DNA from: Lepidodermella squamata
Lineage: Eukaryota; Animalia; Gastrotricha
Assembly (NCBI GenBank): GCA_047495785.1
Contig: JBLDXI010000017.1
Location: 3,224,001-3,288,000, forward strand
Reading direction: 5' to 3'
Length of the DNA stretch: 64,000 bases
Part shown: piece by piece, positions 3,791-54,664 of the stretch
Numbering within the stretch: position 1 is the stretch's first letter
Layout of the letters: each line of letters begins with the position of its first letter
Translations under genes and position numbers: made by a program
The notes under the pieces: model-generated
Seen by the model: the letters and a program-made list of their open reading frames with translations, nothing else
The model's database searches: none
Told to the model about the DNA's origin: nothing

Positions 3791-5883
3791 TTTATCGAAA
3801 AAAATGAACCGGACACTAAAAACAGGGAAAGTTGAAATATAATAAAATTAGGTGAACAGCAAAATGCGTCTTGATCAAGAGAAATGCAATCGAACAGCTG
3901 CTTTGCGAGTGTGCGTGCGTTCAATGAGAAGCAAAAACATAAAAAATGTTACGAATAAGCCACGCCACATTGGCACGCGCTTATGAAACCAGCAGCTGAC
4001 CTCATTCACAAAGCTGGCTCAGCGGGAAATTTCAGCTCAGTTTGACAAAAACACAGCTCGGAAGTCACGTTTTTACCAACCACTGTTTGCTGCCAAAATC
4101 GATGACTCGATAGTGATTTTCCATCAAGCCGGGCAGGCTGGTAAATAAGCCGGTTTTTCTTCAAATAATAATGCAGAATAAATACCTGCAAGCGCAGCGA
4201 GGCAAACTCGAAGTAAGAAGAAGAAAATTATAAACATGGAAGGCGAAGTTTTTGCTGAGATCCAGCATTTTATAGAACACGACAGGTGTATTTATCGTGC
4301 TACGACGTGCCCTTGAAATAATAGGCGAATGCAAGCCAAGCATTGCTGTCCCGGAAAAAAAACTACCATAACAAGATCAGCACGACTAATTAGAATAATT
4401 ACTGAATGGCGACTGAGACAAAGCATAATAGCATTCAGGGTGATGCTTTCGAAGCCTACATTTTAGCAGCCTCGCCTTTAATTATTTTGCATAAATGGCT
4501 GTTGCTGCTGCCGCTGCTGCCATCTAACAAAAGCCGAAATTAATAATTAAGAGGCAGAAAAGTTGCGTCATGGCAGCTCCTTTGTTTGGCGCCATGGGTC
4601 TCGCATTTTGCATCAAGCAATACGCTAGTCCAACACTGTGCACCTGCCTAAATATCGATGCTGTCTGGACGACGGCAATTCGCTCACGTGGGGTAGTAAA
4701 TGATAGAATAGCTTGTAGAATTTTTAAGCACGATTTGGCATTCATTTCGGCAATATTTCCTTGCGCTTTACGCGTGGAGAATGCCTTTCCGTCAAAGCTT
4801 AGTACCGCACTTTTATTGCTTTATTGATAAATAATGAGAATACAAGAACGAGTACTTTAGGTTCCATATTTTGAAACTGACGAATAACTAGAAGAGAAAT
4901 AAAATATAAAATAAAATAAAAAAATTAGTCATCGGTTTGAAAACATTGAGGAGCTTTGAAAAATGGATAGGATAAATCGTGCATGCATCTCAGAGAAGCA
5001 AGAATTTTCAATTTTCAGCAGGGCAAAGATGCATTTTTTCTGCGAATTAAGTATGAGCCAGACTGTGGGGCTTAATCAGCTTACTCAATCGCAGCATTAT
5101 TATGCAACAGATTGTCTGAAAATAAAGAGTATTGAAATGAAAAAATCAAATTAATTGGGTTGTTGCCGATTTTCCCATAAATTCTCCTGCTATTTTGATA
5201 CCTATACTGCTAATACCTCTTTCTTCACAACTAGTCACTTAATTCAGGGAATTTATCTCTTTTAATAAGGAAATACATATAGACAACCTAATTTGGCCAT
5301 TGGCTATAACCCCGAAGCTGATATTAGTAAGTCGCCGTGATTTTTTAGTACTTGCAGCCGGTAATTGCGCCGGATTACTCTCGTAAGGTACCTTTGGTCG
5401 TATTAAGAGGCTGAATGGGATTATAGTATTCGGTCAGTGCTTCGTTTTACATAGGTAAATATTTAAATCGACTATTTTTGCAATACTGCATACAGAGCGG
5501 AGAAAAAACTATAGACATATGCGAGCAATTACGATAAAGCCTTCCTACGATGCAGCACAGCATTCTCTAGCTTTTTATGTGTTCCTAGACTGTCATATTC
5601 GAGTGCCTGCAGTAAGCGGAGCACATCACGATATTGTTTGATATAAAAGCTCACAGGTGAGCACGCGCGAAATATCGATGAAACGCTTTCGCGCAGTATC
5701 ACTCAACTGAGGCTAAGACACACGTGAAAAGTCAAATTAAAGCTATGTTTTTTTTAAACATTATTATTATAACATCCGCTTCAAGTCAATTTTCAGAAAT
5801 TTATTAATGACAGATGTTCTAGCTTCTTGAGCTTGAGCTTGTTTGAAATTCGCGTCAAACATTTGGAATAATTACTCGCCGGA

Positions 5884-6486
5884 TCATGACGCGTAGGGTA
5901 GGTGAGGTTCATAAATAACAGATGATGAGGAAATTATGACGGTAAAATAAGAGTCTTTTGCTGCCAGAGCAAAATTTGGAATAGGCCTCGTGACAGTTGC
6001 AGAACGTGATAGGTCGTCTGAGAACTTTTCAGCAATTTGTGCCATCTCTTTAGATAGGACGTGATCGCCTTTGATTATCTTACGCTCGAGAAAATTGTCA
6101 TCAGCTCGGCGACCTTCAATATTATATTTTCCACGCATCCCATCTCCACGTAGTTTTTTTATTATTTGATCATTAACATCGATTCTCTTCGGCTTTAAAT
6201 AGGGTTCATCGCCCGGCAGGGGAATAATTTTCGTTTGGGAACCCCAAAAGTTTTCGTAAACAGCGAAGCCTACAATTGCAATCACGGCTCCGAGGAGCGC
6301 GCCAAGTGTCGCTTTACCAAATCCTTTCAAGCCGTAGTCATGTGTATCGAAATCGAAACAACAGCCAACGTACGGTTTGTTCTCCAGCATGTCGTAGTCA
6401 GGTTTCGCACCGGCTGAACACTGCAGAAACTGAGCTTCCAGGACGATGCAGCAGAGAAATACAGCTAATCTAGCGGGGCGCGTCAT
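5884..6486 (-). CDS. Orphan predicted single-pass membrane protein, tandem paralog A
   Basis: Intronless 200-codon ORF with signal-peptide-like N-terminus, VGCC, a hydrophobic segment, and clear protein-level similarity to 6882-7466. Confidence 0.75.
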   Translation of the reverse strand: MTRPARLAVFLCCIVLEAQFLQCSAGAKPDYDMLENKPYVGCCFDFDTHDYGLKGFGKATLGALLGAVIAIVGFAVYENFWGSQTKIIPLPGDEPYLKPKRIDVNDQIIKKLRGDGMRGKYNIEGRRADDNFLERKIIKGDHVLSKEMAQIAEKFSDDLSRSATVTRPIPNFALAAKDSYFTVIISSSSVIYEPHLPYAS

Positions 6487-6881
6487 ACGGATGGTCTCGA
6501 TCCCCAACAAAATCTAGATAAACAAATCATGAGATCATCAGGATTGGAACTCGATCATAGGCCAGATGATAGAAATTAACTTTGCAAATACCTATTGCTA
6601 ATATTAAGGTGGAAGTTTTTTTTATAATGCGAACATAAATTTTTCGAGTCAAAGCACCATAGTTTTTTTTTAAATATCATGTTTTATTTGGGTAAGCACT
6701 ATAGTTCGATTCCCAAAATTGCTTATTAGACTACGACACATATGCTGTGTAAAAGTTTTATTTGCATTTATTTTGCGAATGATGAAAAAAGTTTTTGCGG
6801 TTATATTCTATAGCATACGCTATCTATGCGATAGTCAGCTATAAATCAGCTGAAATGTTACATCATTTGTTTTATTTTTGA

Positions 6882-25000: not shown

Positions 25001-25430
25001 ATTATTGCAGTCATTATATCGGAAAATATTAGATCGGCTACTCAAAAACATTGCGAGTAATTTGAGTACATACTCGCATCACAGGCAAATATTTTTGAAC
25101 CAATTTTTATGGCGGAACACTTGGAAACCCTCAAGGATCCAAGGAAGCTGTGAAAGTGGTGCAGGAGATGGAGTCCTGGAAACCTCTTCTGAGAGTTCTG
25201 AGTTCTGAGTTGCTGAGTTGCTGTTATAATCGTTAAAAAAATTTATTTACTAAATCCACTGCTATTGCTACTGTCTTGAACTAAAGGTTATAGGTTACTT
25301 ATATACTAAATCCACCCTGCTGCTTCTTTAAGGGCCAGCGGTGTTATTCGTTACACTCACGTTGCACTCATGCGCGGCGTATCGCAATAAGGCAACAATT
25401 AAATTTCTTGAAAATCGGGAGTTTTTTAGA

Positions 25431-26473
25431 ATGGTTCAAGTATGTGTCATCGGCGCAGGAGTTGTTGGTTTGTCCACCGCTTGGCAGTTACTGGAGCAAA
25501 TGGCAGATGTGTCAGTGACTATTTATGCCGACAAGTTTACTTTGCATACAACCAGTCACGGTGCCGCTGGAATATTTCAACCTCAGCCCGGCGCAACGAA
25601 TGTCAATGATTTGGACAGAATTTGCTCCGAAAGCTGGCATTTTTATGACTCCATCGTTAGATCTGAAGAAGCGCGAGAAGCTGGAATTAGCGTTATTGAT
25701 GGCTATCAACTGTATACTCACCGAATGCCGCTCGAAGAGGAAAATTATCGAAAATTTGTTTATCAATTTGCTGAAGTTGATCCCAAAACATTAACGTTTC
25801 TGCCCGATGTGTCTGGCATTGTTCAGGCGTATCACTATACCACTTTGCTGGTCGAATGTCGCCGTTATTTGCCATGGTTAATGAGAAAACTTGAGCAAAA
25901 GGGCGTCAAAATTATACAGCGTTCATTAAGTGCGCTTGAAGATGTATCTTCTGAGGACTTTGATATTATTTTCAATTGCGCTGGTCTTGGAAACATCCAG
26001 TTGACGAAAGACAATAGAATGAAACCTGTTCAGGGGCAACTAGTCCGCGTTCATGCTCCCTGGGTGAAACAATTTTACAGGCTTGACAACCACACATACA
26101 TATATCCGGGTCAAGATTTAGTAGTTCTCGGCGGCACACGTGAAGTTGGAGAGGCAAGCACTTATCCGAAGTCAGATGTTACGGCTTCGATCGTTTCACG
26201 CTGTTGCAAGCTGGTTCCCAGCCTTTCCGAAGCTAAAATCGACCATGTATGGGTAGGCTTGCGTCCTTACCGAGACGAGGTGCGCATTGAAGAAGGTACA
26301 CCGTTGTTCAACCCCAAAACTAACAGAGAAATTCGCGTAGTTCATAATTATGGGTAATGTTTTACATGTTTCTACTTTATTAATCATCCTCAATTTTCCT
26401 CAGCCACGGATCGAACGGTGTCGGATTATCGATGGGCTCTGCTGTCATTGCCGTATCACGAGTGTCCACGTAA
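25431..26473 (+). CDS. DDO: D-aspartate oxidase-like, copy 1 (2 exons)
   Basis: GAGVVG FAD-binding motif, TTSHGAAG, APWVKQFYR, YIYPG, GGTR, VGLRPYR, HNYG|HGSNG; ends SRVST*. Confidence 0.9.
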
Positions 26474-26583
26474 CTGCACTATAGCTCTTCCTTACATGAC
26501 ATCAAATGTTATAGAAAAATCGCGATATTTATTCGGAATGCTCTATATTTTCTGATTAACTGAACTATCATAGGTTAGTTAGG

Positions 26584-27654
26584 ATGGTTAAAGTCTGTAT
26601 CGTTGGTGCCGGCGTCGTTGGATTGTCGACAGCCTGGGAAGTCCTTGAGAAAATCAAAGACGCAGATGTTGTTGTTTATGCCGACAAGTTTACGGTTGAA
26701 ACCACGAGCCACGGCGCTGCGGGTATTTTCCAGCCGCAGGCCGGCTTGACAAAAGCCGCTGATTTCGGCAAAATTTGCTCGGATAGCTGGACATTTTTTG
26801 ACAGCCTTGTACGATCTAGCGAAGCTCGTAATGCCGGCATTGGCGTCATTGATGGATACCAATTGAATGAAGATGTAAGACCTGTGGAGGATGAAGCCTA
26901 TCGGAATTATGTCTATCACTTCGCGGAGGTCAAGCCCGAAAGCTTAAAATTTTTGCCCGAGGATGCGAGAAAGAAAATTGTTCAAGCGTTTCACTACACG
27001 ACGCTAATGATCGAATGTCGACGGTATTTGCCGTGGATGATGAAAAACCTGGAAATTCGAGGCGTTAAATTTCAACGCCGGTTTTTGTCGTCGTTAAACG
27101 AGCTAGCTTGTGAAAACTTTGACATTGTTTTCAATTGCGCTGGTCTTGGAAATCAGGCTTTGACAAACGACGCTCAAATGTACCCGATTCGTGGTCAAGT
27201 CATCAGGGTTAACGCGCCTTGGGTGAAACAGTTCTTTATACTAGGCGATTGGACTTACATGTTTCCCGGGCAAGATTTATTAGTCCTCGGCGGTGTTTAC
27301 CAGGAAAAGAACTACAATAGACAAGTCGACGCCACCGATTCGGCTTCGATCTGGGAACGCTGTAAACGGATCGTTCCTAGCATTGCCATGGCTACCGTTG
27401 ATCATGAATGGGTCGGATTGAGGCCTTATCGCTCGGAGATTCGCATTGAGGAGGGTTTGTCTATGATAAATCCGGCTAACAATCACAAAACACGTGTCAT
27501 TCATAATTATGGGTATTAATCTTAGAATTGTTGATTACTTCGAACTACTCCGGTATTTTTGCGTTTTAGCCATGGGTCAAATGGCGTTGGTCTTTCTATG
27601 GGAACTGCTGTTGCTGCAGTTAAATTGGCATGCGATGCGAAATCAATGCTATGA
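26584..27654 (+). CDS. D-aspartate/D-amino-acid oxidase family, copy 2 (2 exons)
   Basis: Same motifs and intron position as copy 1; ends AKSML*. Confidence 0.9.
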
Positions 27655-27777
27655 TTCTATCAAACCGAATTTTTTTTGATTGCGCTATTTATCAATCTTC
27701 AGTAACCTTTTCTTTGATTGAAAAATGGATTTAGCTGCTAAAATTACCCATGTCTAGTTATCTAGTTGAATTTTATA

Positions 27778-28847
27778 ATGGTTAAAGTTTGTGTTGTTGG
27801 CGCTGGGGTAGTCGGCCTTTCGACCGCTTGGCAAGTTATGGAGCAATTTAAAGACGCTTCCGTTGTCATTTACGCAGACAAATTTACGACACAAACAACA
27901 AGTCACGGCGCCGCTGGAATTTTCCAACCGCAACCTGGGTTGACGAAAGCGGCTGATTTCGATAAAATATGCGCCGATAGTTGGGCATTTTGCGACAGTA
28001 TTGTTCGCTCGAGTGAGGCCCGGAATGCTGGCATTAGCGTCATCGATGGCTACCAAATGTACGATAAACGTGTTCCTCTCGAGGAGGAAAATTATCGAAA
28101 ATTTGTTTATAACTTTTCGGAGGTGAATCCTCAGTCTTTGACCATGATACCCGAAGCTACTCGTGCTAAGATCGTGCAAGCGTATCATTATACGACTTTG
28201 CTCATCGAATGTCGCAGATATTTGCCTTGGCTAATGAAGAAACTTGAGCAGAGAGGCGTGGAAATAAGACAGCGGCTGTTGAATTCATTGGATGAACTCG
28301 CTAATGAAGACTTTGATTTAGTTTTCAATTGCGCTGGACTTGGTAACCTGAACCTAACCAAAGATGTTCGGATGTTTCCGATTCGTGGTCAGCTGATTAG
28401 AGTTAACGCTCCATGGGTGAAACAGTTCTTCTTTTTGGGTGACTCGACGTACATTTTCCCGGGCCAGGATCATTTGATACTGGGTGGCTGTCGTCAAAAG
28501 GGTAATTACAGCACGAAAATAGACGAAAATGATTCGCAGGCGATATGGAAGCGATGCAAAGAACTTGTTCCAAGTCTGTCCAGTGCCACCGTTGACCATG
28601 AATGGGCTGGCCTGAGACCTTACCGTGATGAAATTCGGATCGAAGAGGGTTCTTACTTGGTTAATAGCACAAATGGCCGCAAAATTCGTGTGATTCATAA
28701 CTACGGGTACAATATTCCCACTTATTGGATGAACGCCTTTTACTTATTCTGTAATCTTCTAGCCATGGGTCTAATGGCGTTGGTTGCTCCATGGGTTCCG
28801 CAGCGGCCGCCGTTGCTTTGGCTAAAAATCCAACCTCTAAGCTGTAA
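27778..28847 (+). CDS. D-aspartate/D-amino-acid oxidase family, copy 3 (2 exons)
   Basis: Same motifs and intron position; spliced product ends NPTSKL* (PTS1). Confidence 0.9.
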
Positions 28848-29212
28848 ACACTAGACATCAATATAATGGAAATTGATTCTGAAAATGGTCCTTTAGACTT
28901 GCCAAACATGCTTTTAGCTGACATGATTGACCCGGTTTTTATTAGCTATTTTAGGCCCGTCACTAATTTGACCGGTGCAAATATTTTTTGGTGGAAGTTG
29001 AATCTGCTTTATAGCTCATAATTATTTTTTTGAAACCGATGCGCTCTTTCTATGCTATTTTGTTGGGGATGCTTTTTACAAAATATCGAATTCGTTTATT
29101 ATATATTTACACATATTATTATATTTTACTATTTACCACATTTACTACACGATTAAATTCCGTTTCTGATAGGTGGTTGTTAAATGAACAGTGGTTTACA
29201 TGAGCTTCGATC

Positions 29213-51811: not shown

Positions 51812-51971
51812 AAACCTTATTTACGAATTGTTGTGGGCTTAGGGTGTCAATAACAAGCGCGGAAAACATCAAAATAATGTGCAGCATCTTTGATAAAATA
51901 TATTCAAATCCACAACTGCTGAATATCATGCTATTTTATTTTTTTGTAGATTTACTAAATTATTTCTTGTG

Positions 51972-53551
51972 ATGGGAACACCCGTTCGAAATGTTGCGAG
52001 TGGACAACAGTCGATGAAAAACGCTATTGCATTAGCGGCTGAATCAGCTGTGAGTCCGCCTTTCGTGATAGAGTGGCGGCAAAATCGATCTCCCGACGTT
52101 ACGATATCTCCAGCAGATATCGGTAACAAGAAAGTTACCAGTATGCCATTGCGAAACTTGTGAAATGGGTTGCAAGCTTTTTTCCACTAGAACAGACCAG
52201 AGCAAGTATCGCGAAATCAAGGCGGAGCACCGCGTTCAACGAAACTCCTCATCATACTGCGCTGACTTCGACCGCTAAAAACGTTAATACTCCTGATGAC
52301 TTCGATGGACAGGTACCGGCCAAGAAGCCGAAACCTGTTCGGCTCGACACGGTTCGCGAACTAAGATGTAAGTAAATAGTATCTTTTTAGAATAGGTTAA
52401 CTTATCCTAGACCTAATTTTCAGCCGTAGTTAATGCTGCCAAAAAGCATCAACAGCAGCCACCGAGTTTTTCTCCCTCCGTGGAATCTCTACTACCATCT
52501 TCTGCCAGCAACAGGCGATATTCGATCGGCTACAACAACAACGATTCTTTGAATGATGATAGCTACAATCAAATGCTCAGTCAAATCGTCGATTCAGTTT
52601 CGAATTTCTCGGAAGAGCGATCTTCAAACCCATTTCGGTACGTTTGCCTTGCATGCGATTTATCCTCCGGCTAATGCTTTTACTTTATTCAGCTCTCCAA
52701 TTCAAAAGCATCAGCCTTACATGGCTCAACCTACACCATCTGATTCGGCCTTGGATTCGACAACCTCTACTCCGTTGCGCAGAAGCGTGAGAAATGCTGG
52801 GAAGTCAAGCAATGTCACTAAATTGCATGAATTCGACCAGGACGAAAATTTCGTCAAGCCCAATTCCGCGAAATCGAATCAAATGCAAGCGCCCAGTTCC
52901 TCGAGCTCCAATATCAAAGAAAAGGCTGTTCAGCCTGTTGTTAATATTGCTGAGGATGACGACGACGAGGATGATCTGGTATTACTAGCTGCTCTCGAAC
53001 AGGCGGAAGAATCAGTATCAATTGTCCCTCCTAAACCTGTTCAATTGAATCAGCAGCCTGCAACAAACCTTAATAACCAAGCTACACTCGTGTCATCTTC
53101 GCAGCAGAAGCGGCAGTTCACATTCGCGCCCAAAAACACAGGCCCAAGTCAGAATACTGTCAATAAACCGACTGCACCCCCTGTTTTACCTGTAAGAACT
53201 GGCAACTCGACGGTTACCAATATAGCAAATAGCCAAAGTTTCAAAGCACCCAATTCAGTAATCCCGAAGAATGGCCAAAACGCTAAACCTCTCGCGCTTT
53301 CATCTCAAGCATCGTCTTCATCTACCTCGTCTGCGACCAACGGTTTGACCTCCAGTCAAAAAGCTCAGATAGAAGCGAAACGATTGGCGGCTCTTTCGAA
53401 GCTTCATCAGAAAAATCCGAGCTCGTTTGTCGCTCCGCAACCCATGACTGGCAATGCAATGCCTTCCAGACCCGGCGCCCCTGCCATTACGGTGAACAGG
53501 GTGCATATGGGACCTCCGCGACCTCATAATGGATATAATTCCAAAGCATAG
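51972..53551 (+). CDS. Disordered protein with RPA-binding motifs; ETAA1-like candidate, 4 exons
   Basis: Three short GT-AG introns (first 52141-52190) join four ORFs in frame; motifs SP..IEWRQNRSP, DDDDEDDLVLLAALEQAE, LTSSQKAQIEAKRLAALSKL. Confidence 0.7.
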
Positions 53552-54664
53552 AATCGAGTTGTTATAGCTTACGTTTCAGTTCATGATGCTGATGAGTCTT
53601 ATTAATGGTTTTATGTGCACAGCTTACGTATTATTTTCAGCTATATAATTGGTGCGATTGCCATTTTACTTGAAAGCATGGTCATGTGAATCTTGCTCAT
53701 CATTACTCATTTTTACCGACCGATTTCATTATTTGTTGAAATTAAAAAGAAAAATAAACCAGAATTTTTTACGTGAAACTTTTATTTCGCTTTTTTCATT
53801 CATGACAGTAAAAGCAAGTCAGGCAATCATTTCCATTCAGAAACACGCAATTGCACCTTGGCGCTCATCGGACATCACTGTTTCTTCTATAAATTCACGA
53901 TAGGTAGATTTTCATGACAGCAATCTATCGAAGACAGATAGATGTTATAAGGCTCGTTTGTACGTATCATAAGTTCAAATAACTTGGCAAGTGAAACATG
54001 CAAAGTTTAGTTATCCGGATGATGATAATAGCTTCTCACGTGACGATTGTTACTAGGGCTATGACTTCAATTAGAATAGTTGTTGTGGTCTGGATACAAA
54101 GCAATGTTTTCCTATTTTGTCTGCTGCAAATTGGAGTTCAACGATGCGGTTTCGATTCGGTAAACATTCAGTGACTGCTTCATAAATAATTATTATTTCG
54201 GTAAGACCAGAAAAGAGGTATAAGCCCTTAGATGCCAGGCAGGGATAAATTTCAAAGCTGAATGCAGCTACTTATGACTCTCGAAATTTAAACAAACAAG
54301 AAAACAACAGGCGCTGTCATGCTCATCCATCGAGCATATGCCGACTCGGCGTTCTCTCGCGCGAAATATAATCGATTTATGAATATATTTATAATTTCGA
54401 ATAATTCTGCTGATAAGTAAAGTATGAAAGTACACAAAACGCCGATTAGAGATACGTATGGAATAACAACTAATATACAACAATGTACATTGATAATTTT
54501 ACAAATAAGGACGCACAACGTTAGTAGAACGGCAAAAGTATCATCTCCGCGATTAGCCAAAATTAAATCTGCTAATTTTTTAAACAAGATCTAGATAAGA
54601 CCCTTCAAGAGGATGCTTTAAATCATTCACCAGCATTCAACGTCAATCACGGTCGGGGTTGGCT

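Follow-up and report, generated by a model that had tools for sequence, protein, structure and literature searches.

The ATR-activating domain (AAD) of human ETAA1 contains an I105-F106-W107 pattern together with S95-P and S111-P (PMC6891097, PMC13468113). F106 and W107 are essential, and S95 and S111 are cyclin-dependent kinase (CDK) sites; within residues 91 to 115, the S-P sites lie 12 residues before and 4 residues after the Trp (PMC6891097). Cryo-electron microscopy published in 2026 showed that Ile105 and Trp107 of the ETAA1 strand e-beta1 pack on the ATR FAT domain, as Ile1143 and Trp1145 of TOPBP1 do, and that a phosphomimic at residue 111 of ETAA1 nucleates a short helix from Pro112. 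Beyond two aromatic residues, AADs have almost nothing in common (PMC13468113). In the literature that we found, ETAA1-dependent ATR activation is described in human and Xenopus systems only, with the wording "vertebrate" or "metazoan," and no description of an invertebrate ETAA1 was found in a literature search that did not extend to annotated homologs in sequence databases. Here we describe a gene of the gastrotrich Lepidodermella squamata, located at positions 51972 to 53551 of a 64,000-nucleotide stretch of contig JBLDXI010000017.1 (positions 3,224,001 to 3,288,000, forward strand; assembly GCA_047495785.1). This whole stretch is referred to as the window, and its numbering is used throughout. 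We consider it slightly better than an even bet that the product is an ETAA1-like, RPA-tethered, CDK-regulated ATR activator. The gene and the motifs on which this proposal is built are as follows.

51972-52140, 52191-52367, 52424-52637 and 52693-53551 (stop included), + strand: coding region in four exons, from reading frames and the transcript contig of run X2.
52053-52112, + strand, residues 28 to 47: candidate ATR-activating core, SPPFVIEWRQNRSPDVTISP, with I33-x-W35 between S28-P, S40-P and S46-P.
52949-53020, + strand, residues 273 to 296: acidic run followed by an amphipathic helix, AEDDDDEDDLVLLAALEQAEESVS, candidate RPA70N-binding motif, from conservation, helix prediction and alignment with the ETAA1 RBM1 peptide.
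53345-53413, + strand, residues 405 to 427: basic helix, LTSSQKAQIEAKRLAALSKLHQK, candidate RPA32C (winged-helix)-binding motif of the SMARCAL1/TIPIN type, from alignment, conservation and AlphaFold2.
53753-53771, + strand: AATAAA signal (53753-53758) and poly(A) addition site at about 53771, from the sequence and an A-run after 53771 in the X2 transcript contig.

The predicted product resembles ETAA1 in being wholly disordered and in carrying, in the same order, an I-x-W strand between S-P (CDK) sites, an RBM1-like acidic helix and an RPA32C-type basic helix. It differs from ETAA1 in its length (472 aa, about half that of ETAA1, the RPA motifs of the human protein being at 599-622 and near 894), in its neighboring genes, in having no homology detectable with Pfam or HMMER, and in possessing the extra islands KKPKPVRLDT, NDSLNDDxYNQxLSQ and KRQFxF. 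To our knowledge, no wholly disordered protein other than ETAA1 has been described in which an N-terminal I-x-W between CDK sites is combined with an RPA70N helix and a C-terminal RPA32C helix. The RPA32C partners SMARCAL1, TIPIN, XPA, UNG, RAD52 and RFWD3 contain folded domains. Because only ETAA1 has this combination and order of motifs, and because no folded domain of the other RPA32C partners was detected here, we prefer to view the product as an ETAA1-like ATR activator. With the N-terminal helix of SMARCAL1 and the C-terminal helix of TIPIN (ELM LIG_RPA_C), the window protein has the docking motif alone in common, and unlike those proteins it contains neither the SNF2 and HARP domains (SMARCAL1) nor the Swi3 domain (TIPIN). 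A disordered activation segment with a critical Trp or aromatic residue also is a feature of the TOPBP1 AAD and of yeast Ddc1, Dna2 and Dpb11, and Ile1143/Trp1145 of TOPBP1 forms the same I-x-W strand, pairing with the ATR FAT domain. In contrast to TOPBP1, the window protein has no BRCT domains and no strand-turn-helix arrangement, and its recruitment would use RPA rather than 9-1-1. An acidic run followed by an amphipathic helix, over approximately 20 residues, is likewise found in the ATRIP checkpoint recruitment domain, BLM, WRN, HelB, RMI1, PrimPol and p53, but those motifs are alike in composition and not in sequence.

The gene at 51972-53551 is real, spliced, polyadenylated and constrained. 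Its start codon is the ATG at 51972 and its stop codon lies at 53549-53551 on the + strand, and the three GT..AG introns (52141-52190, 52368-52423 and 52638-52692; 50, 56 and 55 nt, respectively) are all skipped in the transcript contig of run X2. In this contig, the donor in use for intron 1 is at 52141 and the obvious GTAA at 52123 is bypassed; this adds six residues, and the product therefore is 472 aa long, not 466. Differences between strains were synonymous in 9 of the 12 coding changes, and the remaining 3 replacements were all in linkers. We regard the gene as real and constrained because of the spliced, polyadenylated RNA, the 9:3 ratio of synonymous to replacement differences, and the existence of a syntenic ortholog, described below. 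A sequence-only reading of the window had placed a candidate gene for an ATR activator at these coordinates; ATG, stop, exons and transcript confirm the gene, and the three motif strings that it had quoted were all found in + strand reading frames of 51972-53551. Its description of the remainder of the protein as low-complexity also was correct: half of the residues are S, P, A, N or Q, and disorder is predicted. AlphaFold2, which was supplied with two-species alignments (the window protein and its ortholog), placed 211 of the 285 exon 4 residues at a predicted local distance difference test score (pLDDT) of <50. The models indicate disorder throughout, except for helices at 279-292 and 407-427 and local bumps in confidence at the Trp motif and at KKPKPVRLDT.

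An exhaustive phmmer search with exon 4 against 1.84 billion representatives returned one true relative (P0001, E 3e-6). Two other matches, a bacterial repeat protein (P0002) and P0003, were dismissed as low-complexity noise. P0001 sits on a 40.8-kb metagenome scaffold, L001, and is the C-terminal piece of a gene with two exons (5299-5638 and 5699-6642), one intron and a product of 427 aa. Of the three introns of the window gene, this ortholog retains only intron 2, in the same codon phase, and lacks introns 1 and 3; introns thus have been gained or lost between two fairly close relatives. Cluster look-ups gave matches limited to 99%-identical alleles of L001. The window and L001 proteins are 36-40% identical overall, with the identity concentrated in islands. 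A 9-residue sliding window over the alignment of the two proteins marked the following five as the strongest.

Island 1, residues 25 to 48: SPPFVIEWRxxRSPDVxSPA.
Island 2, residues 98 to 114: KKPKPVRLDTxxEL.
Island 3, residues 153 to 169: NDSLNDDxYNQxLSQ.
Island 4, residues 273 to 296: the acidic run plus LLAALEQAE.
Island 5, residues 413 to 427: the core of the C-terminal helix.

The three motifs singled out by the sequence-only reading fall in three of these five islands. Their spans are identical at 46 of 62 residues (74%, versus 36% overall), a value matched by random segments of the same length in approximately 9 of 100,000 draws, so that the conservation of the motifs is beyond chance. 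Smaller pieces also were conserved between the two proteins, namely, MGTP[VI]RN at the protein start, ETPHH, NTPDD, TPSD..STPxRR and KRQFxF.

The two C-terminal motifs were compared with human peptides by Smith-Waterman alignment and shuffling, using only sequences taken from papers or database entries. The basic helix is identical in L001 at 15 of 23 residues and is modeled as a helix at 407-427 with a pLDDT of 84-93. SMARCAL1 5-30 (the peptide of PMC11109976, identical to PDB 4mqv_B) gave its best alignment at residues 405-427 of the window protein and 352-374 of the L001 protein, ungapped over 23 residues in each case (shuffle P of 0.001 and 0.0002, respectively). Human TIPIN 195-219 (7pfo_L) aligned with the same residues (P of 0.008 for the window protein and 0.003 for L001). 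The register common to these sequences is L-[TS]-x-x-[QE]-[KR]-x-x-I-E-x-[KN]-R-x-x-A-L-x-[KR], with 9-10 identities to SMARCAL1 5-30. The peptides used in this comparison were those of SMARCAL1 and TIPIN; on alignment and modeling, the helix is a predicted equivalent of RBM2, the C-terminal RPA32C-binding basic helix expected of an ETAA1 family member.

The acidic helix is identical in L001 at 15 of 19 residues, and a helix is predicted by AlphaFold2 at 279-292 with a pLDDT of about 60. The best alignment of the ETAA1 RBM1 peptide (PDB 8jzv_B) was at residues 274-286 of the window protein and 247-264 of the L001 protein (P=0.0026 and 0.0004, respectively). In L001 this alignment is ungapped, with 8 of 18 residues identical in the pattern E-x-D-D-x-D-D-x-hydrophobic-L-x-x-A-x-x-x-x-E, and covers all of the published contacts except W600. 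The RPA70N contact positions D606, D607, L609, L610, Y611 and A613 (PMC10479964) correspond to D280, D281, V283, L284, L285 and A287 of the window protein. Contact residues other than W600, which is without a counterpart, are kept or conservatively replaced. Judged by motif alignment and predicted helix, the element would qualify as an RBM1. The human motifs that the sequence-only reading had cited were confirmed against PMC6891097 (ETAA1 91-115) and PDB 8jzv_B (RBM1 peptide). Both C-terminal motifs resemble human RPA-binding peptides that were defined by experiment, and they do so to a non-random degree. Because of this resemblance, we think it likely that the protein docks on RPA through both of these predicted motifs.

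The window protein has a single Trp, W35, which lies near the N terminus in the best-conserved block. Residues 28-47 are identical in L001 at 16 of 20 positions, 9 of them consecutive, and PPFVIEW is invariant. I33-E34-W35 therefore is conserved in the one relative, as the sequence-only reading needed it to be. S28-P and S40-P, 7 residues before and 5 residues after the Trp, both are kept in L001, and the motif coincides with a pLDDT bump of 73 amid disordered sequence. The I-x-W strand of ETAA1 thus is matched at the level of pattern only, and CDK-type S-P sites are present on both sides of the Trp with a spacing unlike that of the human protein. The regular expression SP..[ILV]xW..SP, which was composed after the sequence had been seen, matched 0.16% of shuffles. 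The protein has 10 S/T-P sites, all within residues 1-215 and none in the C-terminal half, and 9 of the 10 occupy positions that L001 shares. Among the 10, a conserved S-T-P-x-R-R has the form of a Polo-box docking site; the stretches noted here are window positions 52238-52260 and 52607-52636 (residues 73-80 and 177-187) and their L001 equivalents. A metagenome scan with the N-terminal alignment A3 also returned L003 and L004, which were rejected as chance matches to SPPFVIEW on a high-GC algal contig beside a starch-synthase-like gene.

The reading of the product as ETAA1-like has to be weighed against several results that count against it. Database searches were run exon by exon, the whole spliced protein being used only in scripted comparisons, and no Pfam family was found in any of the four exons at E values up to 10. 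Searches of the PDB with exon 1 (phmmer) and with two N-terminal profiles (A3 and A1), again at E values up to 10, gave no match to the ETAA1 AAD; the set searched contained the AAD chains 9zd3_F, 23fe_G and 13de_F. When human ETAA1 91-115 was compared with the window protein by Smith-Waterman alignment and shuffling, the best alignment fell elsewhere and was not significant. The sequence-only reading had proposed a match to I-x-W-x-Q-N-S-P, of which I-x-W and S-P are conserved; Q-N is not (it is T-S in L001), and the S-P that follows is one residue farther from the Trp than in the human protein. The window protein showed no clear counterpart of Phe198 or of the helices e-alpha1 to e-alpha3. 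For the RBM1 alignment, shuffling the query gave P values of 0.085 for the window protein and 0.006 for L001; because of the former, the similarity must be attributed in part to acidic composition, and the position-by-position match exceeds a compositional one in L001 and only weakly in the window protein. RPA70N motifs form a loose acidic-hydrophobic class that also resembles other acidic docking motifs (PMC10479964). Lastly, all conservation rests on a single comparison between two species, that of the window protein with L001.

Other searches were likewise negative. When compared with the exons by BLASTP, the human peptides proved too short to yield an alignment, and phmmer and profile searches of the PDB with exon 4, the acidic region and alignment A4 gave no relevant match. 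A word-indexed protein search returned nothing for exon 4 and only L001 pieces for alignments A1 and A2, and an ESM Atlas feature search returned only arthropod clusters without names at 0.81, or nothing. The sequence-only reading had anticipated that the relationship would be missed by BLAST, and indeed Pfam, phmmer against the 1.84 billion representatives and PDB profile searches give no ETAA1 link. Its proposal of a half-sized ortholog or analog of ETAA1 held in part: the content and order of the motifs match and all three are conserved in L001, but the similarity of the ATR-activating core is not significant. Membership of the ETAA1 family is not demonstrated by sequence, and our claim is that the protein may work like ETAA1; orthology with vertebrate ETAA1 is unproven, although it would be reasonable for a disordered protein that evolves fast. 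Identification with other RPA partners was rejected. With no Pfam family in any exon, there was neither the Swi3/TIPIN domain, with which TIPIN binds Timeless, nor the HARP domain and SNF2 ATPase of SMARCAL1, in place of which disorder is predicted. Likewise, the folded domains of XPA, UNG2, RAD52, RFWD3 and ATRIP were undetected in the Pfam scan of the exons.

The evidence for RPA docking applies equally to a disordered adaptor that is tethered to RPA and does not activate ATR. The N-terminal half of such a protein, with its PFVIEW strand, ETPHH, NTPDD, S-T-P-x-R-R and KKPKPVRLDT elements, would serve to bring some other factor onto single-stranded DNA, such as a phosphatase, an enzyme of replication or repair, or a reader of the BRCT or Polo-box kind. 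This explanation, which we consider rather unlikely, gains from the lack of significant similarity between the N terminus and the ETAA1 AAD, from two further conserved islands that have no ETAA1 counterpart, and from the confinement of the ten S/T-P sites, nine of them shared with L001 and one of the Polo-box type, to residues 1-215. Apart from ETAA1, however, no known RPA32C partner is wholly disordered and combines an RPA70N motif with an N-terminal I-x-W between S-P sites. Moreover, weak similarity is to be expected even of a true AAD (PMC13468113).

Three independent human RPA-binding peptides each align best on conserved islands in both species, the RPA70N contact positions are matched one by one (PMC10479964), and the helix register of SMARCAL1 and TIPIN is common to the window protein. 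These results are difficult to reconcile with the idea that the product is a lineage-restricted disordered nuclear protein whose likeness to RPA motifs is coincidental, with its two helices serving other partners, the acidic one being, for example, of the Ctf4/AND-1 or transactivation docking type and the basic one coiled-coil-like. We hold this to be improbable, even though disordered proteins often contain acidic-hydrophobic and K/R/A/L/E helices, every motif match is short, the hypotheses were formed after the sequence had been viewed, and relatives among the 1.84 billion representatives were limited to one species. As for a spurious open reading frame in low-complexity DNA, with no protein-coding gene at all, the composition of the sequence and the want of a database family are what would be expected; yet the transcript is spliced and polyadenylated, the start and the islands are conserved in a syntenic ortholog, and synonymous differences outnumber replacements 9:3, leaving this explanation with virtually no chance of being correct.

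If the product is an ETAA1-like ATR activator, as we prefer to think, it would be an intrinsically disordered adaptor that acts via short linear motifs, as human ETAA1 does. The basic cleft of RPA70N would accommodate the acidic amphipathic helix at residues 275-293, and the basic helix (residues 405-427) would bind the C-terminal winged helix of RPA32. By analogy with ETAA1 e-beta1 (Ile105/Trp107), the PFVIEW strand would add to the ATR FAT domain, and CDK phosphorylation of S28 and S40 near this strand would lead to stimulation of ATR-ATRIP. RPA binding, ATR binding and activation, control by CDK and common descent with vertebrate ETAA1 are what we infer from the motifs.

Further features of the locus, within and next to the gene, are the following.

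52313-52363, + strand, residues 98 to 114: basic patch, VPAKKPKPVRLDTVREL, with the look of a nuclear localization signal and leading into a short helix; a conservation island, with a pLDDT of 69-76 and helical turns at the L001 equivalent.
52534-52584, + strand, residues 153 to 169: acidic/aromatic island, NNNDSLNDDSYNQMLSQ, with an invariant Tyr163 and an S-Q site; a conservation island with no significant match to anything.
53108-53125, + strand, residues 326 to 331: KRQFTF (KRQFxF), a short island between the two RPA motifs, with K, R, Q, F and F invariant in comparison with L001.
51940-51949, + strand: unpaired 3' splice-acceptor-like site (a T-run then GTAG) in the sequence, 22 nt before the ATG and 17-26 nt after the NOG1 poly(A) site at 51923.

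The basic patch could be part of an extended activation domain, and by sequence the Tyr163 island is the sole candidate for a second aromatic element of such a domain. Both of these islands follow the Trp, but for neither was a match found among the human helices of PMC13468113. PIP-box and APIM readings of conserved islands were dismissed, as the sequences did not fit the consensuses quoted in PMC8053108. PP1 RVxF and B56 LxxIxE readings also were dismissed, since the sequences do not fit those patterns.

Upstream of the gene lies a NOG1-like gene, the mRNA of which is polyadenylated at 51923 (a loose A-run in the transcript), 49 nt ahead of the ATG at 51972. The acceptor-like site at 51940-51949 is a possible spliced-leader acceptor, in which case the NOG1-like gene and the candidate gene might form an operon-like pair; no spliced-leader sequence was seen here. 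The downstream neighbor, on the minus strand, is a Max-like basic helix-loop-helix-zipper gene. The order of a rhodopsin-type G protein-coupled receptor (GPCR; 7tm_1), NOG1, the candidate gene, Max (opposite strand) and PSME4 is the same in the window (40374-62286) and in L001 (1-12642), except that in L001 genes for TFIIA and RPS19e separate the GPCR from NOG1. No synteny with the neighborhood of vertebrate ETAA1 was found, the neighbors here being NOG1, Max, PSME4 and the GPCR.

In run X1, the region 52596-52709, which spans intron 3, was present as two contig versions, each at half depth. One version carries 7 substitutions and a 1-base deletion, indicating a heterozygous or two-haplotype patch centered on intron 3. 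Elsewhere in the window, at 25341-28854, three tandem + strand open reading frames (338, 311 and 362 aa) have full-length matches to the Pfam family DAO (flavin adenine dinucleotide-dependent oxidoreductase), representing a local triplication. An Rfam scan of the whole window gave no match.

Whether ETAA1 is older than vertebrates, with distant animals keeping a fast-evolving "mini-ETAA1," is to our minds an evenly balanced question. In such a protein only linear motifs would survive, namely, the I-x-W strand and its CDK sites, the RPA70N helix and the RPA32C helix, and it would therefore be missed by homology searches. Were this so, the second pathway of ATR activation would date to before the vertebrates, and the 472-residue protein would be a natural minimal ETAA1 showing which parts are essential for TOPBP1-independent ATR activation. 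It also would provide a compact natural construct for the structure and biochemistry of ATR switching by a strand and phospho-sites. The arrangement of I-x-W between S-P sites, then E-x-DD-x-DD-x-hydrophobic-L-x-x-A, then L-T-x-x-Q-K-x-x-I-E-x-K-R-x-x-A-L would then serve as a search template for finding cryptic ATR activators in model invertebrates. Should RPA binding alone hold, the protein still would be a new RPA-docked, CDK-regulated adaptor.

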